A stretch of 64,000 nt of DNA from contig JALDTO010000179.1 in the NCBI GenBank assembly GCA_023515725.1, positions 136,039 through 200,038 on the forward strand. The letters are read 5' to 3'. Of the stretch, positions 3,844 through 44,070 are shown one piece after another (position 1 is the stretch's first letter; each line of letters opens with the position of its first letter). This DNA is from Amoeboaphelidium protococcarum X5. Its lineage: Eukaryota > Fungi > Aphelidiomycota. The notes under the pieces were generated by a model. That model did no database searches, was not told where the DNA came from, and was given only the letters and a program-made list of their open reading frames with translations. The position numbers and the translations under genes were made by a program.

Positions 3844-4935
3844 TCACTACTGACTCTACTGTAATTCTTACGTGTCTTAAGCAGCTTCATTCACCACTGA
3901 GAGTTATATATGTCTCTACTACGACTACTATTATTGCATTTCTATTTGAGGCAACGATTGATCAATCTCCAATGGGAAACGAGTAACAATAGTATTAATG
4001 CCTCTTTATACCAATGACTCGCACTTTGTCATAGCAACATACATTATGCCTGCAAGAGCAAGGAAAGACCCCAATATTATCAAACTTAAAGGATAATCGA
4101 TGCCAGTGAATAAAGAAATCGCACTAGCAAAAAAACCAGCCGCCGTAGTCAGCCAAGTAATGGCATTCCTAAATTAACGGCCGTGCACTGGATTACCGTT
4201 AAAACTTAGAATCGATAGTCCAATTCCTATCAGGATATATATTATTCCTACAATGTATGGCGAGTACTAAAGAACTAAATTTAGTACTAATTTAGGGCTA
4301 TGGTCGGAGTAATCGTCGCGGAAAATCTCTATGGCCATACGACCGCGTATACCTTACGGAGCATTATATTAACTATTTCCAAACCCACGTTTACGCAACT
4401 GAGGCTGACGATTATTGTGAATAAATTATCTAGATTAAAATTTGCTTAATTGAGCAAATGCGTCTTATAAAGGCTAACGATTCTAGCCAGCTTGCGCTCG
4501 ATGGTAGCTATCTAGCGCCAGTTAGGACATTTAATCCAGATCGAATTCATCTACAGCATAATTAAACTCTTGGCGAAGTATTTGCTAAATAAGTGCGCCA
4601 TCAAATCTATCTTTACTTGGTCGCATTGAAGAGACATCCTACACTAGGCGGGAGAAGGACTTTTGCAGTACAGAAGGCGCGCTTTCATAAACTTCCAGCC
4701 AAAAGGATGGATTCATTATACTGTCAACGCCAGCGTTAGATTCCATCACTTTACGCATTACATTAGACCCAACACTTTTTAAAAATTTTAAAGATTGTCC
4801 ATCAGATAGACCAGACTTTACAATCGCCATCTAGGCACCGCGTGAGCAGAATGCTCCTGATTAAATCTGAGGATAGACCAGATTGGACCAAACGATCAAA
4901 TAGCTAAAGATGATACCAAGCCAGTAGTTTGCCAT
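3844..4935 (-). CDS. Uncharacterised signal-peptide plus C-terminal multi-TM protein, paralog A
   Basis: 364 codons open in code 6. N-terminus MANYWLGIIFSYLIVWSNLVYPQ, motifs FWLEVYESAPSVL and QLRKRG, then about 3 hydrophobic helices. Confidence 0.8.
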
Positions 4936-5392
4936 GTCCTTTGAATGAAACCGTATATATACTTCTACTATCAGTGATAATTTTTGAAGACCAAAGTGCC
5001 ATTTGCCTGATCAGAGAAAGTCATGAATAACTTGAAGCACGAGACTTCAAATCTCGAGATGCCCAATGTCTCACGTGTGTGAATGACTAGAAAAACCGCA
5101 CTAATCAAAGTTGAGATTAGTGGTTCTTCAAACGGGACATCTTGAGAATAATATGGATTTATCCTTCCAATTAAATGTGTGTGGCCCCAGCTTCTTTGAA
5201 GTAGTGTTGGTCAGACACGACTTGGTTTAAGTAAGGATTCGCAAGGTGAAGTCGTGTATTGTTCGCCAAAGCACAAGTCCACAGTAATTTAATGAAAGTT
5301 GATTTCTTAATGGCCATAGCATTACAGTATTTATAAAAAATAAAGTTTAATTTAGCATATTTATTTAAATGCAAAATCATGAAACAAAGCTA

Positions 5393-6472
5393 TCAATGTC
5401 TAGCCGTAGTTCCAGAGAGTACATCAATGTGGTTCTATGCTTAATCCGCACGAATTTACTCCAAGTGCATTGCAGCCAACTCTATCGCAGGCTACTCGTT
5501 CAACTCCGAATCGTAATCAGATGATTCAGAATCACTATCATCTTCCGGCAAAGGGAACCAATTGACACAAATACACCATATCACAAACGCAGCCACAGAA
5601 AAACTAGCAATAATTATAAGACCAATGTAGACTGGGCCTGATGTCAGTAAGAGTATTCCCGCACTGAATGCACCACACGCTGCAATAAGCAATGTGAAAA
5701 CTTTTCTAATCCTTTATCTGGGAGACAAGCCTTATCCTGATAAACTGAACAAGACAAGCGTGACACCAGTCATGATGAACAAGACTCCCAAGATAATTTT
5801 AATAGATTTTTAAGTGTTTGGTGACAATTGCGATATCACATCATCTCTATCCTGATCTGCAGCTCTTAATTCAATGCCAACTCCAGAATCGAATAACTTT
5901 CTCCCGTAGTAATTGCTTACACCTCTCTTAGTTAACAATCTTGAATGGCTGCTTTGCGCTAGATTATGTCGAAGCTGAGCCAACTCACTAAAAGCTTCAT
6001 CAGCTGTAATTACTTCAATATCTCCATTCAATGCTCTATGAAAGCTTTCCAACGCACCAGATGCAAAAATATCCATATCCTGTCTGTTTTATCTGATACC
6101 ATATTATTACATCAAGACTTTTTAAATAACACCACTATCAAACTATTGATTGTTGACAACTAATGCCTTCTCAACGCTATCTATTAGACGCGTCATGGCA
6201 GACTTGAGCACTTTAGGAGCCTAATTGTAAACGTCCAGCCAGTAATTTTAATCCATAAGTTTACCACCTTTTATTTAGAAGCTATCTGATCTCGCTGTAC
6301 TGAGAGCATCATTGCCAACGCGATACAGATACAAACGTGAATCCTAGTCAGACAATCCAGATGATAGCAGAGCAGTTTACGAGCGATAAGACAGCTTTTA
6401 AATGTGTGGATATACTATATTAGACCACAATATGAGATAGCTATAAAAAACACTGAGATAGATACTTTACAT
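5393..6472 (-). CDS. Uncharacterised signal-peptide plus multi-TM protein, paralog B
   Basis: 360 codons open. MQSIYLSVFYSYLILWSNIVYPH, SGLSD, YWLDVYNQAPKVL and SRLLTKRG align with paralog A. Confidence 0.8.
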
Positions 6473-6750
6473 AGTGTAGACGTAATTAAACTCTATAATT
6501 CAGACTTGGTCTCCAAAGTAGAGGATTAACGATGCAACACATGACTGGGGGCTCAACCAATCGTTTCAAGGGGCCATTGTCAGGTACGCGTTATTTGCAT
6601 CCTTATAGTAGTGCATTTCCATATGAAAATCAGGAATCTACGCTAACTGAACACGGTGTCAAAAGAACTTAAAGAGAGATTTAGGTGCATAAATTCTACT
6701 ATCATCATGATATCCATAGTGTGTCTGTCTAATTACTACTTCAATGAAAT

Positions 6751-7547
6751 TCACTAATAGTACAAATCACGATCAGCGATACGATCATAAACCTAAACGA
6801 ATCGATAATAGAACTCCAGATAGATCATAGTCAAATAAAAACCTATTCCAGCAACCTTATTATTTTGAAGTATCATCGCTAAGTCACTGAGCATCAAACC
6901 AGCACCAACCAGTTGATTCATGCCAGGAACCGGGTCTAACAACTATTCCAGAGATCGATAGTAATCTGACAGGCTAGTATAAAAAGAATACCCAATAAGA
7001 ATCTCCAAGGAGCCAAAGAACACGCGCAAATTCTCAAGATTATCCCCTAATAGACTTCGTTTAAAGAGAGATACGTCTGCTACGCGTGTGTGCCTGAGCG
7101 ACCCAACTTTATCCTGCTCTTTTCTATTCTTACCCAGCTCCGTCTAGAATTTTTTAAATTATTCGTAGATTATAATACCATCTTTATTGGATACTTTTAT
7201 CCCAAATACAGAACTAAAGAGTTTTTGGATTAGGCTAGCATCGACGTGATCAATGTCGTTCTTTGCAACGACAGTTACCAAGGATTACAGCGCGTACTTT
7301 AATTTAACAGGTGCATTCATAGAAATATCAGCCAGGAATTCGCTAGAAAATCCAGGATTCTTAATTTTTTAAATATGCATTTTTAAGCAAAGTAACTGCT
7401 TACTTGCAAAAGATAATCTGTAGATGTCTTATCTTTAAACGCTCTTGCGATTCCAGCTGCTTGGTCAGTGTTAATGCATCTGTCCTGGAATTACACCATT
7501 GCATCGTATAGAGATAGGTACGTCATAATAATCACAAGCAATATCAT
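6751..7547 (-). pseudogene. Paralog C of the same family, frameshifted near 7380
   Basis: The signal-peptide frame (MILLVIIMTYLSLY..) switches near an A-run around 7380 to a 210-codon frame containing FLADISMNAPVKL, DASLIQKL, SLFKRS and TM helices. Confidence 0.6.
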
Positions 7548-7767
7548 AATAAGTCGTCTGATAGTACTTTTTGGAAAGTAGTAAACACATTTTGGGCCAA
7601 AATTTTAAGTTTGATCTAATGCATGTCACGGATCGCGTTACGTTTCAACTGCGTGTGAATTACCACGTTTCTAGTAAACAAAATACACGGCGCAACGCAG
7701 TTAAACCTCAATGAATTGGAAGGATCAATGTAACGCTAAAACATTTAATAATCGATCTATTCATGCT

Positions 7768-8565
7768 TCATCTATTAGTTTGAATGTATCTCATCGACAT
7801 GAAGTGAATAACGCTGCGCAATATCATGGCTAAATAAAGACAAAGTAACGCACTCGGCGTATCTTACATAGTCATACTAACCCCAGCCGACATGTGCCCC
7901 ATTGCTTGGACTAACTCCTGTAATAGAACAGGAAAGCTTAATCTTTACGTGCCAGCGGCCAAGGGCTCCATTGCCACAGTTGCTATATCTAATCCAATAA
8001 AGATTTGAGTAAATCCAACTAAAGCACGCACTCTACGAAGGGTAGTTTCATCATTCGACCGCTTTTGCAACAATCGAGAATTTACCTTCTGACCGATGGC
8101 GTTATCTGTAATGGCTAGTAAGTCAAAATCCTTTAGATTCTCTGTGTAAACAGAAATTATATCGGTAGTAATGTCCAAAGGCAAAACCATACCAAATTCT
8201 TCGCAAGAAAGACGCTGTATTAAGGAGGCATCTATCTCAGGGTAGACTTTGGTCAGGCGATGTAATTTCAACAATGATCTCTCTATCACGACATTCAATT
8301 GCTATGGCGCATCTTCATATATCTGCTCTAGATACTACTAACGATACACAGACTAAGGGCCAAATTAATCAATTAAATATAAGCTCTCTTCTCCAATGCT
8401 TTCCAGATAGCTGAGCGATTTCCCAGACAGCAGATTTCTAAGGTGTAGATTGGCGTGTGAATTAGATGCGACACAAGCGATATTATCTGATTGTCCATCA
8501 AATTTGCGCAATTGCAGACCGAATAAGGACGCAGATAAAAAGCTCAACACCAGAATTATTAGCAT
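7768..8565 (-). CDS. Paralog D of the same family
   Basis: 266 codons joining supplied ORFs 8365-8586 and 7945-8298. Signal peptide MLIILVLSFLSASLFG, YLEQIYEDAPQQL, DASLIQRL, SRLLQKRS and C-terminal hydrophobic helices. Confidence 0.75.
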
Positions 8566-9221
8566 AGTCTCTGTATAAGTAATCACTTTTGAAATTACTG
8601 ATGGCAGGGAGAAAAAGATTTCATCGTATTCGCACTTTCAATATCACGCCAGGGGTCATTTAAACGCGTGTTAATGTGAACCTTTGAAGTTTCAATGAAG
8701 CTTATCTGCAGAGAGACAAATATATATATAGAGCCCTGATACTTTGGACTTGGATAAATGAAGCATAATAACAACGGAACATGCCACGTCCGGGTAGTAT
8801 AGCTTAAGAGCTTTAGACTCATCCAATGCACAGACAGTTGTTATACATTCATCACAATAACTAGAAATGAGCGGTTGGCTAAGATTAGAACGAGGATTTT
8901 GCCCGTTGGTCTCACGCTTTTCATATTGTGAAGAAGCTATGAATGGAGTAATTGATGAATGCAACTCACTGCATTTCTTTATAAAGGATATGAGTATAAA
9001 GCATTTCCGTGTTTTGACCTTGACACGTCCCGTTCCACTTCATTTCATAAAGCTGGACGTTTGTAACATGCTGCGCAGTGGTGCCGCGAATACTTTCTCA
9101 ATACTGTTGTAACAAGTCAGTCAATCAATCGAACAGATTATCAGGAAACGTGCAATTTCTAATGATATTGGAATAATTAAAAAAGGTGAAATGCGATAAA
9201 CAATGCAATTTCGATCTCATA

Positions 9222-11855: not shown

Positions 11856-12843
11856 TCATTCGCTTCGGTATAAAGCTTCTTAAGTGATCTAAAATTCTTC
11901 AACATCAGTGTGAAGATTCGTCAAAATATCATAATTTTGCTTGTGATACTGGATTAAGGCACTGATGAGATCCACCAAGTTGCGAATCGTCTCTGGCGAC
12001 CCAACCACCAACTTCACCTTATACTAAGCATCCTTCAACGCGTCATTAAAAGTCAACTCGGCCTTCTCCATATCCACCTGAACTTGCGGAGTAGGCGCAT
12101 TCTTAAAGCGAGTCTTGGTGACTTCAAAATGCTATTTTGCACTCCATAACTACTTCTTGGCCTTGATGGCAAACTGGATGTTGGTGTTCAAAGTGGCACT
12201 AAAAGGCTGCATAAACTTGTTGGCCACCTCCTCTTCCAGCTTGAGACGGGTGAATCCAATCTCATCTTGAGCCTCAGCAAATCTCTTCAAAGCGGCACCA
12301 AGAGGATCCTCTTGACCAAGTAGTACTCCATGTTGATGTGAAGCTTTAGCAATGGCATGAGCAAGAGTCTTGGGAATCTCCTCCTGTGCACCGCTACCAC
12401 TACCACCGGTGGACGAGAATTGAGATGCTCTAATCGGACTACTTGTAATAGGAGACTCAGCTGCTTGTTATTATTAGGATGCAGGTGGCTTTAATTGCCC
12501 AAAAGCCTCAGACATTTTAGAGTAAATGTCTTTCAAGTTCTCTCCAACTGATGGATCATAATCAGTCAAAGTCAGTGGACGATACAGTCTTAACATGGTC
12601 TCATACAGCGACTTGACTTGTTCCAGTTTTTACTCTTTTGCCAGATATTCCGGAGGTAGCTCGCACACGCAATCTACATTATAATTACACTATTAAGGTT
12701 TGAAGAGGCTTTAAAATAAAAGTACAAAGAATATTACCTGGATCAACCTGAACTAATTTATCGCCAGTTAGCTATTTCACCTGACCAATACCCTCCTGAA
12801 GTGACTTGGTAAAATTCCCAAACGCGCTCTAGAATCCGTTCAT
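11856..12843 (-). CDS. GVP36: BAR-domain protein, Gvp36-like (one intron, about 12674-12737)
   Basis: ELPPEYL and PKTLAHAIAKA motifs with a helical BAR pattern. A 64-nt GT..AG intron restores the frame. Confidence 0.75.
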
Positions 12844-13322
12844 TGTTCTACTATAATTATTATACTAATCTAGATCGTGCTAATTTAACAATAGGGAGTT
12901 TTTAACAGGGAGCGTTGAAGATTGGGGAGAGAAGGGTCCTCGTTGAAGTTTGACTGACAAGAAAGAAATTGGACGAATCAATCATTCGTGCACCAAGTCC
13001 TTTTGAAATTTTTTGTCCATAAAGTATTTGTATGATAGTTAGTCTTATTTTAAATACGATTATCAATGAGATTCTATATATTTTTACATACTCTTCAATA
13101 CAAGTCAATAATCTAATTACTCGTTTACTTTATTGCCAATCTTCTGAGCTTGTCTCAATACCTTAACAATACCAATAACTCCTGAGTGGTTTTAAGCTGC
13201 GACCATCCTCATTGATATCACAATGAAATGATGACTGGTCGTGTCACATCTCATCATTGCATTGTATTCAATGCTTACTGACAGTGTTCTAATTCTTTCA
13301 TCGCAATACTGATCATTTGAAA

Positions 13323-15557
13323 ATGTAGCCAAGCCAAAAACGTGAATTATCTGCGGCTGCAAAGACAGCACTAGAAGATTTCAAAACTTAAGCATATCAT
13401 CAAGATATTCCCGGATTTCTCTCCGTGTGTGCTAAGGTGATCAATGAAGTTGATATTCGGATAGTCAAAGAACTTGGCGCATAATCATTTGCCGCATTTG
13501 CTCCAGTATTTGCCCCTTGGTATAATACTAAATCTGAATGGTTTGGACATTATGTTTGGAATGGCAACACAGACGCGTTCAATTAACGACTGTTGTTAAA
13601 ATGCACTGACAAGGACTGGCAAATACCGTAATCTTAATAAACAGAACACTCCTTAACAGCAAAGTTCAATCCTAATTTGAATCGTAAAGACATGGGACAA
13701 AACGTAAGTGAGAGCCAGGAGAAGTAAAGTTTTAGTCAGGTGCAGCATTAAATTGAGAATATCATTGAATCCAAAATGCGGAATCAGTAGATTGCATCAG
13801 ATACAGACTCTCTAATGGCTAAATGGAAATCTAAGCAGTAATAGTCGTCATCTAAGAGTTTGAAGAAGAAGAAGAAGAAGAAGAAAGTGCTACAGCTTTC
13901 GGAATAATCTCTAGTGGCGTTGGAAAACATGAAACCAAAAATCGGCAAGATGAAAAATCGGCGAGAGATTGCCGAACTGAATCAGTATGATCAGATACGC
14001 TCGATTAATATTCGTATATTCCCTGATAAGAAGTTCATACACAAATTCAATGAATGGCTGGATCTCAAGTTTCAAATGGTCAATTTCATCATTAACATTT
14101 TGAATGATTCCAGAGATTAAGGAGAAAAGGTGTCAATACAAGCGCTAAGGAACCATGTTGCGCTAAGTTAAGTCAAAGCCAAAAAGTGCCGCGTGCCTGA
14201 TGACGACCCAAGATTGCGTTGGATGCGAATGCCATCTACAGTGCAAGATGAGATTATTAATGTGACTCGCACGTATTACTATGCGGCTCATGAGAAGTAT
14301 ACAAAGGGTGATATCAAAGACTACAACTTTATGCCAAATAGAGATGATGATTAGTTTTAGATGCTCCAGTTTCAAGCGTAAGATGCCCGTGTAGATCCAG
14401 ATAGCAATCGCGTCCGCCTACTGCCTTCATTCCTCAAGAGCTTTGGGAAACTGTATGCCAAAGATCCTCTATTCTAAGAGCCTGGCAAGATTGACTACTG
14501 GCCCCGTTTCATCAAGTTTGGCTATGGCAGAGGAAGAGCGTTCAAGATCGTGAAACGAAGAAAAAAGTTCTTTGTGATTGTTTCGTATGATGCCTCCTGT
14601 ATATAAGGTCCATTCACTGATTGGTATTACTAGCAACTGCAAGATATGAATAATGCAGATGAGAATCTTGAAGGTGCTAGATCATTTATAAGCCGCCGTG
14701 ATGCGCGTTGCCGTTAAACTGGAAACACTTGCTCGGTGGATCCAGGTGTTAGAGTGAGCATGACCGTCTTCGATTTGGATCGCAGGTCATTCATTGCGAT
14801 TGCGCCTGATTTCAAGTAGCTTTATAAGAATAAGAGTGAATAGATTTCCAATGCATAGTCTCTGAAAGATTAGATGGATAATCGCGCAGCTGCTTTTCAG
14901 AATGGACAATTGAGTCTGGAGGAGTTTAAAGCGTAGAAGAAAGAATTATGGCACACATGGAAGTAATCAAAGAATAATGTTGTTCCCACTGATATTGGCA
15001 TTAGTCGTGCTTACACCAAATTCTCTGCATATGTATCGAATTTGCATAACCGAATTGGCAACTTTTTGATGCGGCATTATGATCTAATCATTCTTCCCGA
15101 GTTTCTGACTATTAAGATGGTGAAGAAACGGAGAAAGCGTTTGAATCTACCTCCCGTTCTAAGTGATACGGCCGATGTACTGGTAACACACTCGCGTGGT
15201 TAATAAAATTCTGGGCATATTCTCCATAAAAATACGCGGAAGACTCTATTGGCGTTTAGCCATTACAAGTGTCGTATGAAACTTATTGCAATGGCATAAG
15301 CTAATATATTTAGATCTGGAAAGTAAGTGCTCGTGACAACGGAGGAGTTTACGTCGAAACAACATCCGTTTCAGAATGTGCTACATAACTGTCTTGGTGC
15401 TGATGAGTACTTCATGTTGGGTGATTTTCGTGCATATCGGGATAATGTTGGATCATATAATGTTATGTCTCGAAGTTTTTCTAAGGAAGAAGTGAAATTG
15501 GTTACTGCGAACTAAGCGGATTAGACACTATACAAGGAGTTCGTGATGTCCATATGA
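13323..15557 (+). CDS. Fanzor (eukaryotic TnpB, Fanzor2/IS607-like) RNA-guided DNA endonuclease, 744 aa
   Basis: 745 codons uninterrupted in code 6. TnpB N-terminal motif RSINIRIFPDKK..NEW; RuvC-I SVDPGVR (D473); LMRHYDLIILPEF; LAFSHYKCRMKL; VTTEEFTSK (E674); YRDNVGSYN (D707). K8 tract at 13863-13886. Confidence 0.92.
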
Positions 15558-15825
15558 AGGTCTTGCAAGAGACTCTATTGCGCCTTGCTTAACATCTGAT
15601 CACTAAATCATAGAAGTGTTTTGTAATTGCTTATCGTTATGCTCGTACTATACTGTTACTCTGCTATTAAGGGGCTATGTGGGGACCCCAATGAAAAGAT
15701 TGCTGGAGCTTTTTTAAAGTGTCCCAATGATCGATTAACCCGCATGGACGAATGGTCCCTGATTAACCGTAGTACTTACTGCGACAAGTTGATAATTGCA
15801 ATATATAATTCTAATAGTGGGTATT
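15558..15825 (+). ncRNA. Candidate Fanzor omegaRNA / element right end
   Basis: 268-bp gap between the Fanzor stop and the convergent TRM10 stop. It holds clustered hairpins (15699-15728, 15746-15758, 15768-15783) and GATTAACC twice. This is the position expected for a TnpB/Fanzor omegaRNA; boundaries are not determined. Confidence 0.4.
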
Positions 15826-16677
15826 TCAATCAAATTTACGCTTGGGGATCACTTCTAGAAAGGCCTTCTCCCAGTCTTTATGCTGCAGATATTATAGAAG
15901 AATCTCAAAGACGTGATTAGTGGTGAGAACATGACGCGTAGACAACTTGATAAATTTTCCAATGGGCAGAGCAGCAGTTCTTATACCCAACTCTTTAGCT
16001 TTAGTAGCACATAAATTCTTGTGTCGATTCTTGTCCACAATTGCACCTATAATGAGAATGGCGTCACTATCAAAATCAATATCAATTTCATCATCTCCAA
16101 GGAACGATTCTGTATCAGCAGTAAGATATATCATCTTGTTGAATTGCTCCTTCAAGCACTGACTAAATGAATCTTTATAAAATTTCACATTCTGCCACTA
16201 ATGAGCATTCTAAACATCAAGGCATCTCTTGGTTGAGTGTAGTGTACCATCATACTTTAGTCGTTGAGGGCTCGGTTGAAGATTATCTGCGCACTCAAGG
16301 CCAGAGATTAGTAGATTGATATGACGATCACTTCTTCGATTCAATCCATAGCAGTGAGATATCTGAGAAGCATTGCTCTTTATCTCAGATACGCTCATGA
16401 GATTATCAAAATCACAGTCAAGCAAGATTGAAAGCTTTGCATTACTATCTATTTATAACGCGACTGAGTATAACGCGTCAGGATCTACAGTCTTGACCTT
16501 TTTATTTCCATACTGCTCTTCGCGCTCTTGCTCTTTCCTGAGACGCTTCTGCTGTTTCTTGGAAATATTGGGTGGGCTATCGATATCCACCACGTTGACG
16601 GCTGTTTATTCCTCTATGAGTTGAGCGATATCTCTCTTACTCTCAGACGTCTTGTTCTTGTCAATTTATTCAGTCAT
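15826..16677 (-). CDS. TRM10: tRNA m1G9 methyltransferase
   Basis: 284 codons. LDCDFDNLM, QISHCYGLNR, IYLTAD, IIGAIVDKNRHK, LPIGKFI and VLTTNHVFEIL. Confidence 0.95.
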
Positions 16678-35069: not shown

Positions 35070-38000
35070 ATGACGGTCAAGTATTGTTTATTGACTTCAA
35101 AGAAGGGATTAAAGTTGTTGCATATCCATACAAAGAGTCCCATTATCCATGCTACCATTGTCGTTCCCACGAAGGCTGAGAATGATAAAGGCCTGCCACA
35201 TACACTAGAGCATTTGATCTTTATGGGAAGTTAGCATTTTCCCTTTAAAGGCACGTTAGATCAACTGGCCAATCTGAGTGTCTCCAATGGTACTAATGCT
35301 TGGACTGATGTTGATCATACCGCTTACACTGTTACCACTGCTTCTGTGGACGGAATGTTAAAGATTCTGCCAGTGTACATTGATCATATTCTGAATCCCA
35401 CGTTGACTGACTCTGCATTCGTAACTGAAGTTTTTCATTACACCAGCAGTGGTGAGTAGAGAGGTGTGGTTGTGAGTGAGATGAAGGCGCGATAGAACAC
35501 CATGGAGGATTTGTCAAATCTAGCACTGCACCGTGCACTTTATGGCGGTAGTTCCTTCTCTTATGAGACTGGTGGATTTGTAAAAGAATTGCGGTAGTTG
35601 AAGGCTCAAGAGTGCAGAGACTTTCACAAGTAGCATTATAATACATCCCAGATCTTGATAATAGTCTGTGGTGGTATTGAATAGGATCAGTTATCCTCTC
35701 ATTTGGATGATCTTGACTCGTATGTCAATCATGACTCCGCGCATATTAATTCTTAGATTTAATCCAAAGTCTGGAGTGGATATTTCCCACAGGCGTATAG
35801 TGGTAACAAAGTGGAGCATGTCAAATATCCATCCGATGATGATAGTGTCGGTTCGGTGCTGATAGGATGGAGAATTGGACACCATCCTTGCTCAGTTCCT
35901 AACGCATCATTGGATGAGAAAAAGCTGATGATTCGTGACCAAGTCGCCGTTGATATTCTGATGGAGTATCTCACAGATTCCTCACTGGCCTTGTTGTAGA
36001 AAGTGTTTGTTGAAGGCCAGAATGATGATAAGATTGTCTACGCAAGCGATGTGGACTATTCGCTGTTGCATTACAGTGATGTTGGAGTATCTCTTGATTT
36101 TGTTGGTGCTAATACTGAACATCTCTCGAAGATTGAAGGGCTTTTGTATAAAGTATTGCAATCTCATTCTATCGACATGGAGCGTATTAAGAGTATTGTG
36201 CAGCGTAGAATTCTTAATCTGCAAGACACGGTGGAGACTGATCCGTCTTCCTATTTTGTTCGTCATATCATCCCGCTGTTCATGTATGGACAGTCAGATG
36301 AAGACATGTCGTTTGCCTTTGTGGACTTTTACTCTGCTCTTTTAGATTAACCGTCATAGTATTGGACTGATCTGTTGACGAGCAGTATTGCATCAAAGGA
36401 TCATTGTGTGATAATTAGTGAACCATCATTGACCATGGGTTAGGAGATTGAGGATGAAGATCGCTAGTATTGCCAGCAGTTCTGTAAGGGAAAGTCTGAA
36501 GAGGAGTTGAAAGGACTAGATTAGCTGGTGGTTGATTCTGCAAAGGCCAATGACACCCCTATTCCTCATGAAGTACTGCAGAAGTTTGGTGCTTTCACTG
36601 TTGATAAATCAAAGTTGATTCAGGTGTCAGATGCTTCTGTCACATTTGCTAATGCGGATGGTCAGAATGGTGGCACTTTGTCATCTCCGGAGCGTAAAAA
36701 GGCTAGAGTCTCCATTAGCGGCTCTGATAAATAATACGTCAGTGTTGTGGATACAGAATTTGTGAATGTCGAGTATATCGTTGATGTATCTGGGTGGGAT
36801 TAGTCCAAAAAATTGCTTCTGGAGATTTTGATGGATTGCATCTTCACTCTTCCAGTGCTTAAGCCTGATGGAATTACACTTTCATCTGAAGATGTCGTAT
36901 AAGGATTGACTAAAGATACTATAGCATATGGTAATTCTCTAGGCTTTGGTGCTGGATCTAGCTTCACTTGTGGTCTTTTTGCGTCATATTTACTGTTGGA
37001 AGTGAAGGCGCATAATAGCAAAGTTTAAGACGCAGTCAAATGGTTAGGACACGTTATTAATCACTCTCAAGTTACTGAAGAGCGAGTCAAAGTTAGCATA
37101 GATCGTTTGCTGGGTGAAATACCTGATTACATCCGTGATGGCAGTTACATGCTTAACGATTTGGTGCGTAGAAAGCTGTTCCAGAGTGATTCTGCCTAGT
37201 ACCTCAGCACTGTTTCAATGCAGAAGGAATTTTTGGACTCTTGTAAACCAGATTCCTCTTTAGTGTAAGCATTATAAGCTGTGCGTGCTGACTTGGCTTA
37301 GAAATCTTATTGCGTAATACACGGCGTATGTGGTTAGAGTCTGACTAAAGATTTGCGTGATCATTTAGAATAGAGCTTCGTATTAGGGGAATAAGAGCCA
37401 GTCGCAGTTACTAAATTCCCAGTGTTGGCTCGTGATTTGATGACTGACACGAAACCGCTGCTTGGACGAATCTTTCTGTGTCCTATAAAATCTATTGAAA
37501 GTTCTTATATGCAGTTCTATGTCAAAGGACCCACTGCATACAATGATCCAATGTTACCATCTCTGATGACTGTTATTGAGTACTTGACCATGTTGGAAGG
37601 ACCATTTTGGAAATCTGTTCGTGGTCAGGGACTGGCGTACCATATGTCCATGAAAATCTCAATAGAGATGGGAATGATTTATTATCGTGTGTATAGGAGT
37701 CCAAATGGGTATGAGGCGTACAAAGCGGTGACTAGAGAACTGAAGGATTACGCGAGTTAAAAGTTGAAATGGAATGAACAGCTTCTGAAATGTGCCAAGA
37801 GCTCTCTATTCTACTCGCTGGTTCAATGTGAGGATAATGTTCACTCTGCGGCTAGTGAATCTTTTATCTCCTCAGCCTTTAAGGGATTGAAGAAGGAACA
37901 TCGTTTGCAGTGGATGTTGGATCAGATCGAGAAGGTCACTTTAGCAGATATATCAGCTGCGTTTGAGTAATATCTAGTTTAGTTCTCCGATCCGCTGCAA

Positions 38001-38153
38001 TCGACTGGGTTTGCCACTACTATGCCTGCAATGACTGATGCCATGTAAAAAGGCTGGACATCGGATGGGTTCAAAGTTGAAATGGTTGAACTTATCTCAT
38101 CTAGTGATCAAGATGACGCGTCGGACAGCGGAAGTGAGCAAGATGAAGATTGA
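35070..38153 (+). CDS. M16 zinc metallopeptidase (insulinase family, Sdd3/C05D11.1-like)
   Basis: 1028 codons. GLPHTLEHLIFMGS (HxxEH), GTNAWTDVDHTAY, GVVVSEM, YETGG and WKSVRGQGLAY. Confidence 0.93.
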
Positions 38154-38239
38154 CAGTAGAGATTCAATAAATTTGTCAATTTTATACATTACATTTTTAT
38201 TAATCACATCTTACACATATTTAGTTAACAATATCAAGT

Positions 38240-39307
38240 TCAAGCTGCAACTGCATCCTGGTACTCAGCCTCAGAAATCATATCAAAGTCATGCTCAGTG
38301 TTTGATAAGGTTGATGTTGGAGACGGTGGATAATCGCTGTCAACCGGCATCCTAACTGACAGAGTGTGAGACACTGGACACTTGGTCAGATTATTCAACA
38401 GCACGATGAAAGTTGGATAATACGGAGTTGGATTGTCGCAAACCAGAGTCTTGCAATCATCCACCTCCTCATCAACGGCTTGCTCATGAACATCAGCGAA
38501 ATCTGCAACATTACCAACAGCGCATTCATTAATCATTGAGCGATTCTCAATCGGCAGCTCAACGTGCTTTAATGAACGAGCAACGCTTTGCAACTCGAGA
38601 ATTTACAATCTGCTAGCAATCTGACTAACCTTTTGCTCGCATTACGCCAAAATGGATTCATGAAGTTTCTGCTATGCGCACCTTAAAGCAATCATCTGAT
38701 CCACTGCAGAAGTGGAGTCAGCGAAATGTTCATTGATTACCACAGACTTACAATCGTCTTCATCGTCATTGATATCACCAATAGTCACAAGTTGCTCAGT
38801 CGCAGCCGCAGATGAAGCAATCTCACTTTCAACAGCAACATCATCATCAGGAAGCAACTGGTAATGCTGATGATCATGCTTGATGGAAGGAGGCTTAGGA
38901 ATTAAATAGTGAGACTCAGTAATATCTACCGGAGACTTGATAACTGGAAGCTCGTCGACGTCGACATCAATCAGCTTTTCTTCAAACTTTACCGATTTCA
39001 TTTGAGTGAACTTAGGATTCATGCAAGCAGTCAGATTGTGGACGCGTATCACCTGCACCAGATCATCGTACGCCAGCTTCATCATACGGCGGTAGTCATC
39101 ACCATTCAGCACGATAAATGATGACTAATTAGATGCCAACATGACTTCAATCACCAGACAGACATCGTAGTCTTGGACGGCGAACAATTGTTTCAGCAGC
39201 TCAACAAAATTGCCGAGACGCGAGAATTTCGTGATTAGGAAGGCCTTTTGCACATTACCCATCTGGGCTATCAGAGATATTTGCTATTCTTCAATGGAGC
39301 AGGTCAT
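38240..39307 (-). CDS. Uncharacterised protein with a PB1-like N-terminus and a C-terminal AIM/LIR-like motif
   Basis: 356 codons joining supplied ORFs 38672-39112 and 38240-38593. C-terminal EHDFDMISE. Confidence 0.7.
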
Positions 39308-39776
39308 TTTTTTTATGTTTATTAACGGATTCTTATACGTTATAGAGTATTATAATAAAAAACTTAACGAAGATAGAAGACAAGACGTATCATCATTCAA
39401 TCTCTAGATATTGAAACCGAGTCAATCTGAGATCAGCCAATCAGCAGAGTTGACAAATTTATATTGTTCGAATCAACAGAGAGATCCATAATGCCCATTA
39501 ATCTAAACTAACAGACTTGAGTGGTATTGGAGTTTTCTGGCATGAAATACTGAAATTACTTTAATATGTATTGCATTAGCGATCCATAAAGTCCTTTAGT
39601 GTGACACTGAATTATAAGGCAATTATATGATAGTCCTACGCGGTAATCACCGTTAGTTTGAAGGCTATTTTTATCCACATTACAGACTCATTCTCATCAA
39701 TTTGAAATTTATTTTTACCACTATCATTCGCACATATAATCCAAAAAAGCAAAGTAATAAAATCAAGTAGCAATAT

Positions 39777-41798
39777 ATGCCATCAAGTGAGGCTGAGTCT
39801 AATAAAGTCATGAACTACAATAATGACCATGTTTCAAAGCAGCGTTAAAGCACTGACGAAGAAGACGAAGTGTTTCAAGACGCTTCCGCAGAAGTTGAAT
39901 CGCCAATGACTGCTGAACAGCAAATAGAATAATAAGAATAAGAAGAGTATACTATTAATACTTCTGATGTTGATCCTAACCAGATTACTGCAGTCATTTA
40001 TTCAAGCGATGATGAGCTAGTCTAAGAGATGGAGTAGCTGAAGGCTGTGATTGATTTAGTTCTCAATTCTGAGTTTGGCAAGGCGTAAAAGTTTCTAGAG
40101 AGTAAACCAGAGTCGCTATGCTTCACACACGGCTACTCGGTACTAATGACCATCAAGAGTATGATGACATTTGAGAAGGCTGATTTTAAGCGCGCACTGG
40201 ACCTGTGCTCAAAGACCATTCTGATGGCTGATGTAATGCGCTTGACTAGCAACAAGAATAGACGCAAGAAGCAGGGATTTTTTCGGAGTATGGTGAATTC
40301 CCTAACTGGTCGGGAAGGAGGAGCGGGAGAGTCCATTTTTGATGAAATGACTCTGGTGGAGCGACACGCCGAGCTAATTTACGCCGAAATTCATCTATCT
40401 AAAGCTATGATTAGCATTTTTCATGATGAATCGATTCTGTCGTTTATCAAAGAGGGGATTAAGATCCGGCAGTCTTGGTTCACGTACAAGAAGATTCATC
40501 AGTGGCTTAATCAGCAGTCTGTTCAACATCCCGACAAGTTAAACAGAGATTTTTGTGATGCTCACTTTTTATCTGGCGTCCAGCTTGGAATTGGTCTCTT
40601 TAATCTTATCCTCGGTCTACTGCCTGAACGTGCTCTGCAATTGATGGAATTTGCCGGGTTTAGTGGATCTAAGTAAGTGGGACTGGATACGCTAGCGGAC
40701 ACCTCATCTCTTGGGGGCATACGATATTTCGTGTGTCAACTCATGCTGGTCGGATTCTACGTGGTAATCCCTGCTCAGTATCCATATATGGACCGTAATG
40801 AAAGATTGATCTCCGATATTATGACTCAATAGCTCACTTAGCACCCATAAAGTGCATTTTATCTATTCTTTCAGGGTAGAGTAGAGTTCTTACATCGATA
40901 ACACGATAAAGCTATTGATTACTGCGAACGATCAATGTCATCACAGCGCGATTGGGTTCAGCTGCATCACATCTGTATGTGGAGTAATGCTATTTGCAGT
41001 TGTATACAAATGAATTATCAAAATGCGCAGAACCTTATGGCTGAGTTGCAGAAATCTTCTCGATGGTCCAAAGCTACGAATTGCTATCTGGTAGGCATCT
41101 TTATGTATATGTAGTTGAACGACAAAATGTCACAGGAGGATTAAATTTCCTTGAAGTTTTAAATTGATCACAGCTTCCGTGATGTTCCTCAACTAATGCA
41201 ACGTATTGCTGGCCGAAGGATTCCAATTGAAAAATTTGTTAATCGGAAGACTCGCAAGTACTTTGCCCAGAAGCAGAGGCTGTTCTTGCCTGCTTTTGAG
41301 ATGATGCTCATCTGGGGTGCCTTTCATTACATGCCGACTGAGCTGTTACAAGTCGCTGCCCAGTAAGTCGAATAGGAGCTTGAGTCCATGGATAAAATTA
41401 CATCGTCCGGCACGCAATTGTCCAATGGTTACGATTATTATCAGGACGATGTTGCTTTGGGACATTATATGCTCGCAGTGATTCGTCGTTCGTTGAAAGA
41501 CTATCGCGCCTCTTTACTCGAATTTGATGTGGTTATTGCATAGCGACAGAGTATAAAACTAGATCATTATATCATAGCATACGCATACTACGATCGCGCT
41601 GTTCTATACCTGTTGTAGTTCACTGAAGCCAACAGCACTACTGATGATGCTGAGAAGAAGTAATATCTGACGAATGCCAAATCTGACCTTGAGATGGCTC
41701 TTAAAAGCTCGAAGAAAATCTCATTGGAGAATAGTCTAAATCTACGTGTACACTTTGCATCCAGGCGGGTAGAAGAGTTGGAGGTATCACTAACTTGA
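39777..41798 (+). CDS. Iml2/TTC39 TPR family protein
   Basis: 674 codons. HAELIYAE, GIGLFNLILGLLP..LMEFAGFSG, SRWSKA and RIAGRRIPIEKF. Confidence 0.9.
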
Positions 41799-42084
41799 TC
41801 ATTTTGTATGCGCTTAAGTACCATGTTGAATTTAATTTTGTGTACAAATAAATGCAAAAGTTACATTTCACCTTATTGAAATTATATGCGAACTCTACAG
41901 TAATTGAGTTTTGATTTTATCCGTGTACTCAGTCTTATGAAGCTGCTGTTGTGATCTTCCCCTTTGACGCTTGGGTGGCTTGCGTGTACCCCGTGCCATT
42001 GATTTTATTTTCTTCTCTTTGCTACACTGTCAATCTGCGTTAATCTTCGCAACATATTTTCTAATCATCAAAATATTTAGCAAT

Positions 42085-42684
42085 ATGAAGGAGTTTATTA
42101 TGGGCCTTGTTACTTTGCTCATCACGTTGAACTAGATTCAAGCTCAAGACTTGATCAACGGTTAAACAAAAACTTGCATGATTGTCAATGAGCAGTTCAA
42201 TCATATTGCTCATGGAGAAGCATAATTGAGTTTTGAATGCAAGCAGTCACCGTAGTAATGTCGAATGAGTTTCCTGATTAAAGATGACGCGTCATTCTAT
42301 TGCGATATGAGCGATTGTGCAGCTTTAGATGGTAGTAGGAGCGCTGGCGAATCCACCGTCAGCTCCAGATGTGACAAGGTGAAGTGTAACTGCATCGCTG
42401 GCAAGTCATTGTGTGATACTGACCGCGGGCTAGGATTAGATCTGCAACCAATATTTGATGAGCTTGTGCGTGGTCCTGCCAATTTAACTTGTGGTGCATT
42501 CAAGAATGGATATGTCGATTACAATTGCGAGTTTAGTGAGCCAGCGTTTAGTGAAATATTAGAAGCAATTTCACCAGATAATCCAGTGTTTGAACTTGCA
42601 TGTGAAGATGTCCCATCTCTGGATCCAGTAAGCGGCGGTATAAAGTTTAATAATGGAGCGCGTTTTCTACACCAACGTCCATGA
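42085..42684 (+). CDS. Secreted Cys-rich protein resembling the N-terminal ectodomain of Adp1-type ABC transporters
   Basis: 200 codons. Signal peptide, SFYCDMSDC, CDKVKCNCIAGKSLC, VRGPANLTC and CEFSEP; no ABC domain follows. Confidence 0.7.
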
Positions 42685-43014
42685 TGATACTGAGTGACCA
42701 GTAAGTAACTCTATAAATTCTCTATTTTTCTGTTGCAGTTTAGTATCAGTAAAATCTCTTCGCTCTGACCTTCTATCTCATCGACCAATGTCCAACGCAG
42801 CTATTAAGTGTTGTTAATTGGATATGTTAAATATATGAGCGTTCACGGAAATTTCACCTCGAATCAGGTGTTTAATAATATTCGACAAGCTTAGTAGGTC
42901 TGGTCTTTCTTAAACTGCGTGATTTCTCTTACCACGACTTTTATTCTGCTGCTGATTTCTAAAAATTAATACCACAATATTTTCTTGATATTTTACGATA
43001 AATAGCAGAGAATT

Positions 43015-44070
43015 ATGACAACTTAGTTATAGGAAATATTTGAGGATCTCATGTCGAGGTTTATCATAAATGTGCCGGAGAGCGAGATATCCACCATTGA
43101 GCAGGTGTGCTTTTAGATAGAATAGGCCCACTGGTTCTATGAAGACTTTATTCGAGAGTCACAGCCTAATTTGCCCCATTTTAAATTAAAATCTTTCGCT
43201 GGTGAAATGTTTAAAAGATGTCCTCTGCTCATTGAATTCATAGAATAGTCCAGTGTGGAAGAGATTTATAGTCGGTTCGTTGCGTACAAGATGAATGTTC
43301 CTGTGTGTGGTGCGATTCTCTTAAATGAGTCCAGCGATAAGGTTCTTCTAGTCAAGGGATGGGGATCAAGAGGCAATTGGACATTTCCAAAGGGCAAGAT
43401 CAACTAGAATGAGAGCGATGTAGATTGTGCAGTCAGAGAAGTTATGGAAGAGACTGGATTTGATATACGCGATAGAATTGAAGAGGGGAAGTTTATAGAG
43501 CTGGTTCTGCGTGGCGAGTAGCGTAATAAGATGTTTGTCATTTAGAACATCTCAGAGGCGACATAGTTTTGCCCATAGACGCGGAAGGAGATTGGTGATA
43601 TCAAGTGGCACTGGCTTAAAGACTTACCTGGCTTCAGGCATCAGACGAAGCAGTTTGTGAACAACTTTTTCATGATTTAGCGCTTTATGGGAAAGCTGAA
43701 AGACTGGCTCAAATAGAATAGCAAAACGGGAAGCGCCACCTCCCAGAAGTAGAATAAAGGTGCTTAATCAGATAACATTAGTAGTTCCCCCTCTCATCCT
43801 CCCAGTGTGAGTACTAGTAAAAAGTAAAAGAAGTCTAAATCGGCAAAGAAAGTTTAGATTTTGGGTGGTAGAACAGCTAATGATATTGATCCGGTTTAGA
43901 AATTGCTGAATTTTGATACTCAACTCTCTATGAAATCAACACCATCCCCTGCCACAGCTAAAGAGTAAAAGTCTGCGGACGTGCAAGATAATACAATCTT
44001 CCTCAAGGCGTTTAACCGGCATTTCAACGTAGATGAGCTCATGATTCTGGTTGAACAAAGTCTTTAATGA
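43015..44070 (+). CDS. DCP2: mRNA decapping enzyme catalytic subunit
   Basis: 352 codons. SRFIINVP, FQIEQAHWFYEDF, Nudix box [27 protein letters not shown] and PQTRKEI. Confidence 0.96.

Follow-up and report, generated by a model that had tools for sequence, protein, structure and literature searches.

The data suggest that an open reading frame (ORF) of Amoeboaphelidium protococcarum encodes a Fanzor2 protein of IS607 TnpB descent, and that this protein is probably the sole gene of a recently expanded, non-autonomous DNA transposon of 2.78 kb, which would use an omegaRNA in a cut-and-copy manner. The gene lies in a window of 64,000 nt, which is the whole stretch of DNA that was analysed. The evidence comprises the fold and the catalytic triad of the protein, the copy number, ends and target motif of the element, and an RNA pairing that is kept between families. 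Fanzor2 is a known family with several proven nucleases; what sets this version apart is the loss of the zinc finger and an insertion pattern that is not IS607-like. A previous description of this locus, made from the DNA letters without database searches (the sequence-only reading), recognized the gene but overlooked that the element carrying it moved recently and is present in 23 copies, and that the protein has no C4 zinc finger.

A. protococcarum is an aphelid, a parasite of algae, with a published reassignment of UAR codons to glutamine (PMC5304391) and with a duplicated genome (PMC10608142). The translation with code table 6, in which TAA and TAG are read as Gln, confirmed the ORF without internal TGA and all motifs at the positions reported before, including RSINIRIFPD at residue 226 (13998), L591-P592, E674 within EEFTSK, and R706-D707 (15441). 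The in-frame TAR codons, which had been put at about 30, number 34 (22 TAA and 12 TAG), and the longest pieces under the standard code, expected at 60–70 amino acids, are 78, 70, 62 and 60 amino acids long. In the window as a whole, 69 ORFs of at least 200 codons are present under table 6 versus 2 under the standard code. The share of TAR among the Gln codons is 60% in the Fanzor2 ORF and 51% in 13 host ORFs, and TAR-to-CAR switches in either direction are seen among the element copies in three codon columns. The ORF shares the code of the host genes and is assimilated to it, in agreement with the host-code adaptation proposed earlier. On the other hand, the claim that the gene is hidden by this code did not hold, because the nr record P0051, a hypothetical protein in a 31-member cluster, is identical to the table 6 translation and is annotated with the right code. 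It had also been expected that surveys relying on the standard code would likely miss the gene, but the surveys searched annotated proteins (PMC10530073; PMC10432273). If they missed it, its divergence is the likelier reason, since its score with PF01385 is 18.2 bits, which is under the Pfam cut-off, P0051 has no match to PF07282 (TNB), although its relatives do, and no NCBIfam model matches the 744-residue protein. Pfam searches with stop-free pieces of the ORF returned nothing relevant, and the TnpB model NF040570 matched 24 other loci of the genome, with the Fanzor2 family of the window not among them.

The assignment to the Fanzor2 type, together with the RuvC/TnpB fold, was supported by profile and structure comparisons. 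A profile of relatives matched the mimivirus Fanzor2 structure 9b0l with an E value of 6e-32 in three stretches, far above Cas12f and TnpB. Counted along this alignment, D473, E674 and D707 are in register with the catalytic triad of ApmFz2 (Table 1), which substantiates the rearranged RuvC domain, with P592 and an alternative Glu, that had been described. The AlphaFold (AF2) model of the exact protein (pLDDT 78, pTM 0.70, with pLDDT below 50 at residues 160–187) had 9b0l as its top Foldseek match (E 7e-12), and no Fanzor1 structure was found among the top 50 matches. The superposition on 9b0l (VIA Z 14.9, rmsd 4.1, 391 residues) extends into the Fanzor2-specific N-terminal domain, with which residues 63 onward align in the structure comparison, while TnpB structure 8h1j ties with 9b0l in superposition (Z 14.6). 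When the model was compared with a viral library, giant-virus proteins ranked first. The profile and structure matches, together with the predicted pseudoknot described below, confirm the modelled protein as a Fanzor2 with a TnpB/Cas12f-like fold containing RuvC.

A search with one stop-free piece identified a sister protein of 738 amino acids with 49% identity, whose fold predicted from the single sequence was of low confidence (pLDDT 34). More distant relatives, at 23–30% identity, were found in Tilletia, the chytrid Borealophlyctis, and metagenomes. In one of these relatives, P0004, an IS607 TnpA is fused in front of the nuclease (NF033518, E 1e-15), which supports the IS607 ancestry of the Fanzor2. 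P0004 comes from a soil metagenome (L062:994-3645), where an IS607 MerR/resolvase region and a Fanzor2 of the same clade are encoded by a single ORF, and a degenerate fusion ORF of the same kind is present in Borealophlyctis (L061, P0014). A transposase fused within the N-terminal 225 residues of the window protein was rejected, because this part is dissimilar to the TnpA part of P0004 and because of the domain alignment from residue 63.

The C4 zinc finger between the Glu and the RD is part of the Fanzor motif of Bao and Jurka, and there are no cysteines in residues 680–705 of the window protein. The relatives keep CPFC, and hence the absence of the finger is a secondary loss. Because the finger is present in ApmFz2 and in most relatives, its loss could impair cleavage. 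Nuclease-dead TnpB derivatives are known in bacteria, and many copies of the element sit directly upstream of host genes; together with the lost finger, these observations would fit a protein that binds omegaRNA and DNA without cutting, or only nicks, and serves as an RNA-guided binder, for example a promoter repressor. We regard such a function as improbable, because all three catalytic residues are kept in the window family and likewise in the sister family, whose protein is 49% identical, as well as in the Tilletia relatives with partial finger loss. The fact that relatives sharing the finger loss retain the triad argues for nuclease activity, and in this sense the nuclease may be active, as the sequence-only reading had called it. 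Comparison with an older copy (L023) gave dN of 0.020 and dS of 0.061 (dN/dS ~0.33), and comparison with the sister family gave dN of 0.46 with saturated dS, both of which point to selection on the protein. Between young copies, dN and dS are nearly the same, which is what drift after insertion would produce. The window copy has five private amino acid changes, none of them catalytic, and a frame of 728–758 amino acids is intact in 10 of the 23 copies. In Tilletia, three loci (L054, L059, and L063) hold elements of ~2.8 kb with a related Fanzor2 whose zinc finger is partly lost; these have the right end CTGAGAAG in common and differing flanks, and no A-tract target was seen at them.

The genome-wide search for copies and empty sites, which the sequence-only reading had pointed to, used positions 12700-16000 of the window as the query, and its results defined both ends of the element and a predicted TAM. 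It returned 23 near-full-length copies of the 2.78-kb unit with 93–100% identity, most of them 99.4–99.9% (about 99.6%) identical to the majority sequence. Two of these copies (L006 and L014, a segmental duplicate) share both flanks, so that the copies represent 22 independent insertions. At the homeologous locus L021, the one empty site that was read, the two flanks of the window copy are adjacent; several further candidate empty sites were located by their coordinates. In a DNA run, contig depth is about tenfold higher inside the element than in its flanks. The element of the window extends from about 12971 to 15746, with the Fanzor2 ORF as its cargo and only gene. Thus, of the span 13323-15825 that had been given before, the ORF stands, and the element itself starts 350 nt earlier and ends 79 nt earlier. 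The position between a GVP36 and a TRM10 gene was upheld by matches to PF10455 and PF01746 when the neighboring genes were searched as stop-free pieces: the element sits ~130 nt upstream of the GVP36-like (BAR_2) gene, and the TRM10 stop lies 80 nt past its right end. As had been noted for its surroundings, no transposase gene is encoded inside the element. The copies are found on many contigs among spliceosome-type host genes, and the host code, these surroundings, and the empty homeologous site show that the locus is eukaryotic and not contamination.

The right-end pattern occurs at 44 sites in the genome, which are 27 sites of the window family, 16 of a ghost family, and one sister element; it had no match in metagenomes. 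The ghost family consists of elements of ~1.15 kb without a recognizable gene, which have their ends in common with the Fanzor2 element. Such gene-less loci have precedent (PMC10432273). Two truncated copies miss the 3′ part rather than the 5′ part. The 97% copy L023 has a ghost-type left end (1470-1520), which suggests that the two families have exchanged sequence or that this state is ancestral, and the ghost copy L033 has an insertion of ~2 kb. The sister Fanzor2 gene (G000:C179:334124-336337) is present here in a single copy, which is 96% identical to a copy in a second strain (L053, L058), and its element has the same end architecture with duplications of 2 and 4 bp. A biofilm metagenome also contains the element (run X6 against window 12300-16400), where its left flanks are almost the same as at copies L022 and L023, which suggests that some insertions are common to a wild population. 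Elsewhere in the window (3847-8637, minus strand), four tandem ORFs of alike layout, each with an N-terminal hydrophobic stretch, a dibasic site, and C-terminal membrane-like segments, have the look of a divergent paralog cluster.

Table 1. Features of the Fanzor2 element and its neighbors (positions in the window)
Feature	Position	Strand	Remarks
Neighbor GVP36-like BAR-domain gene	11856..12843	-	PF10455 over cut-off on stop-free piece; start and intron placed by eye
Insertion target motif AAATTG, predicted TAM	12966..12971	+	Host flank; family consensus RAAAWWG, final G invariant
Left copy of 8-bp target-site duplication GGACGAAT	12971..12978	+	Replaces first bases of GGCGGAT left end via microhomology
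Left subterminal inverted repeat, 17 nt	12977..12993	+	Complementary to 15719-15735; 3 mismatches in majority sequence, 4 in window copy
5′ non-coding part	12979..13322	+	Kept in all copies; too short for a transposase gene
Fanzor2 ORF	13323..15557	+	744 aa, TAA/TAG=Gln, TGA end; identical to nr protein P0051
Eight-lysine run, candidate nuclear localization signal	13863..13886	+	Low-confidence, probably disordered segment; putative function
RuvC-I D473 (DPG)	14739..14741	+	Equivalent of ApmFz2 D324
P592, canonical RuvC-II position	15096..15098	+	(Near-)invariant in alignments
Alternative catalytic E674	15342..15344	+	Equivalent of ApmFz2 E467
Shortened TNB segment	15360..15437	+	All four zinc-finger cysteines missing in alignment
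RuvC-III D707 (RD)	15441..15443	+	Equivalent of ApmFz2 D501
Right end and predicted omegaRNA scaffold	15558..15746	+	May overlap ORF; final 85 nt common to ghost family
Hairpin 1, GGGG/CCCC stem	15671..15689	+	Stem predicted in each of three families
Hairpin 2	15698..15732	+	Predicted; 3′ arm overlaps right inverted repeat 15719-15735
Terminal G and right duplication copy GGACGAAT	15746..15753	+	From junction comparison
Predicted guide	15747..15762	+	Host flank, distinct in each copy; length set by analogy with known Fanzors
Neighbor TRM10 tRNA m1G methyltransferase	15826..16677	-	PF01746 E 1e-14

The family left end starts with GGCGGATC, and the right end closes with CCCACATG. Comparison of 24 curated left junctions showed that the target is composed of an A-tract followed by two A/T bases and a G that never varies (AAAWWG), with G at −1 and T or A at −2 in 24/24 junctions, and A at −4, −5, and −6 in 21/24, 23/24, and 21/24 junctions, respectively. 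The inverted repeats are offset from the element ends by 4–5 and 11 nt, and changes in one repeat are mirrored in the other in both the ghost and the sister family. At the right end the junction is exact, while at the left end the first bases of the right flank recur. This repeat is only the G in ten cases, 2–4 bases long in about a dozen (four of them ambiguous because of G runs), and 6–10 bases long in five, in which the duplication has taken the place of the element's initial bases at a short microhomology; the window copy belongs to this last class. Overall, the target duplications span 1–10 bp, and the base after the terminal G is random across the copies. Three junctions (L011, L012, and L018) do not fit this pattern and may be rearranged or mis-scaffolded. 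The same variable duplications are found at the gene-less ghost copies, so they do not depend on a Fanzor gene in cis.

The proposed 3′ omegaRNA at the right end was supported at the level of predicted structure. Two hairpins are predicted in the last 76 nt in all three families, and the loop of hairpin 1 (15676-15683) is predicted to pair with the terminal 15739-15746 in a pseudoknot of 8–9 consecutive pairs in the window, ghost, and sister families. In one contrast between families, sister versus window, three two-sided compensatory changes were observed in this pseudoknot. A change private to the window copy, at 15742, results in a U-G pair; this A-to-G change equals the base at the homeologous empty site L021 (CGCGCAT), which could be due to chance or conversion. 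With pseudoknots left out of the calculation, the window right end folds no better than shuffled sequences (z +0.1, +1.5), while the ghost and sister right ends give z values of −2.8 to −4.6. No Rfam family matched the right end. A pseudoknot of this kind, next to the guide, is typically found in the RNAs of TnpB and Fanzor2 but not in those of Fanzor1 (PMC10711439; PMC11832414). Because the terminal G is inside the pseudoknot pairing, 15747 is the expected first base of the guide. All 31 right flanks are distinct, and their similarity is no greater than expected by chance. Hence, every copy would have a guide of its own, and new sites are not guide-chosen; an RNA-guided choice of insertion sites was rejected on these grounds. 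These data are consistent with a 3′ omegaRNA at the right end with a putative guide derived from the flank.

In the mechanism that we propose, a transcript through the right end would be trimmed to the omegaRNA, with the scaffold stopping at the terminal G and the next ~15 host bases serving as the guide. By analogy with TnpB and with the tested Fanzors, the RNP would cut only element-free versions of the site, because there AAAWWG adjoins the guide match, whereas the occupied site shows CCACATG instead, which differs from the target motif at −4, −6, and −7. Homologous repair from the occupied sister would then restore or spread the element, and ghost copies could supply additional guides in trans. 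The homeologous empty site differs both in the motif and in the guide region, and is therefore probably no target of the nuclease. Movement to new sites would be independent of the RNA guide: an enzyme supplied in trans would join the right end precisely at the target G, and the left end would be finished by host repair, leaving the variable duplication and the microhomology.

The mobilizing enzyme may be of the single-strand HUH type (Helitron2- or Replitron-like), which we hold as a tentative candidate; an IS607-derived serine recombinase with a relaxed core appears less probable, and the largest share of our expectation, although less than half, falls to an enzyme of another kind. A non-autonomous Helitron2-like rolling-circle transposon that captured Fanzor2, comparable to the Chlamydomonas CRe elements with Fanzor1, is a possible but rather unlikely origin of the whole element. 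The asymmetric subterminal inverted repeats, the intact 3′ ends, and the variable duplications starting beside a homopolymer-rich target, all of which are also found in CRe-1,2,3 (PMC3627910), are consistent with it, as is the presence of RepHel genes in the genome (one of them at C179:638581). However, the Helitron2 signature of a 5′ T, a hairpin behind the 3′ repeat, and insertion after TTTT is lacking: the repeat is followed by 11 nt without a hairpin, and the target is AAAWWG. No RepHel-coding element was found to have ends in common with the element, and just one right end among the 44 has a RepHel gene as its neighbor, which belongs to a Helitron nested in a ghost copy. This Helitron (L037:400-4912; G000:C207, ~35815-43309) is ~7.5 kb long, contains a RepHel frame that stays open for at least 1319 amino acids under table 6, and is inserted at TTT; it was rejected as a partner because it is nested and has its own, different 3′ end, a GC-rich hairpin.

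The element could also be an ordinary eukaryotic IS607 derivative, served in trans by a serine recombinase from an unassembled copy or an infecting giant virus, with messy repair at mismatched cores, which we find unlikely. The IS607 ancestry and the TnpA fusions of the relatives, the G-rich left ends, the fixed G at the right junction, which resembles the right-flanking nucleotide of IS607, and the ten junctions with just a single G in common would agree with this explanation. On the other hand, IS607 chemistry depends on a GG target and creates no duplication, while here the base after the G is random and duplications reach 4–10 bp, so that the insertions do not follow this chemistry. Searches with three queries found no resolvase or IS607 TnpA in the assembly, which may be incomplete. 

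It is quite improbable that no dedicated transposase is involved, and that the right end is attached to A-tract promoter sites, unaided by guide pairing, either by the finger-less Fanzor2 itself or by some enzyme not yet described, with host repair finishing the left end; if true, this would amount to a transposition mode not known before, and it would be relevant to the variable duplications of Helitron2 elements that carry a Fanzor, which lack an explanation so far. Still less probable is a spread through an RNA intermediate, with a LINE or Penelope element lending its target-primed reverse transcription. A fixed 3′ junction, a variable duplication, and 5′ microhomology, all seen here, form the geometry of target-primed insertion, but the poly(A) tail is absent, nearly all copies of the 2.8-kb element have a full 5′ end, the two truncated copies lack the opposite part, and the matched inverted repeats of the two ends vary in concert between the families. 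A DDE cut-and-paste transposon was rejected because the repeats are subterminal and offset and the duplication length varies. The single assembly match to the tyrosine recombinase PF00589 (G000:C249:842461-842766) is beside none of the 44 right ends, and the 1.5-kb flanks of copies that were covered showed no tyrosine recombinase; the locus of the match could be a Crypton-like element.

The protein is similar to ApmFz2 of Acanthamoeba polyphaga mimivirus (9b0l) in the fold, the N-terminal extension, the order DPG, Pro, alternative Glu and RD, the triad register, and the pseudoknot adjoining the guide, which is predicted here. It differs in length (744 versus 520 amino acids, at ~15% identity) and in lacking the C4 zinc finger and a TnpA gene; the predicted TAM is A-rich here and GGG in ApmFz2, and inverted repeats with variable duplications are present here. 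The TAMs of Fanzor2 given in a review are 3 nt long and G-rich (PMC13565253). The Fanzor2* elements of Chloropicon and molluscs (Yoon et al. 2023; PMC10711439), likened here by their description only, are also non-IS607 elements with degenerate inverted repeats and duplications overlapping the RNA scaffold. They have been described as cut-and-paste elements with clear duplications, in contrast to the duplications of 1–10 bp and the repeats offset by 4–5 and 11 nt in the aphelid host. The Spu-1 Fanzor1 element (Saito et al. 2023; PMC10432273) is likewise a multicopy nuclease-only element without a transposase within its ends, with a ghost family that has the same ends and RNA, but it has symmetric 30-nt repeats and no pseudoknot. 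The nearest described junction signature is that of the Fanzor1-bearing Helitron2 elements CRe-1,2,3 and of Replitron-1 of Chlamydomonas (PMC3627910; PMC10288648), which have one precise end, variable duplications, and an orientation-specific target. The CRe elements, however, carry Fanzor1, are often 5′-truncated, insert after TTTT, and have known Helitron ends, and no such partner is present here. No paper on Amoeboaphelidium or Tilletia with Fanzor was found in the literature, including the covered parts of the survey supplements, where the Amoeboaphelidium entries of Saito et al. are A. occidentale proteins only and those parts of Yoon et al. list none.

One genome thus defines the whole system, with both ends, a predicted AT-rich TAM, a covarying RNA structure, ~30 natural guides, and a ghost family. 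This makes it testable whether a Fanzor2 can cut without the zinc finger, and also where the variable duplications of Fanzor-bearing elements come from, a question that Bao and Jurka (2013) and Craig (2023) did not settle. The same genome contains a separate multicopy Fanzor1-like family (L041-L048, L050, and L051; e.g., G000:C200:103979) with an intact zinc finger and IDVN instead of DPG at RuvC-I; it also has a short conserved 3′ region, and its right end AAAATACAGTA is followed by a variable flank. A third, TnpB-like family (L049 and L052; G000:C158:423563 and C179:251074) has DLG at RuvC-I (L052) and an altered alternative-Glu motif (HEKGTS, HQKGTS), and is possibly nuclease-dead.
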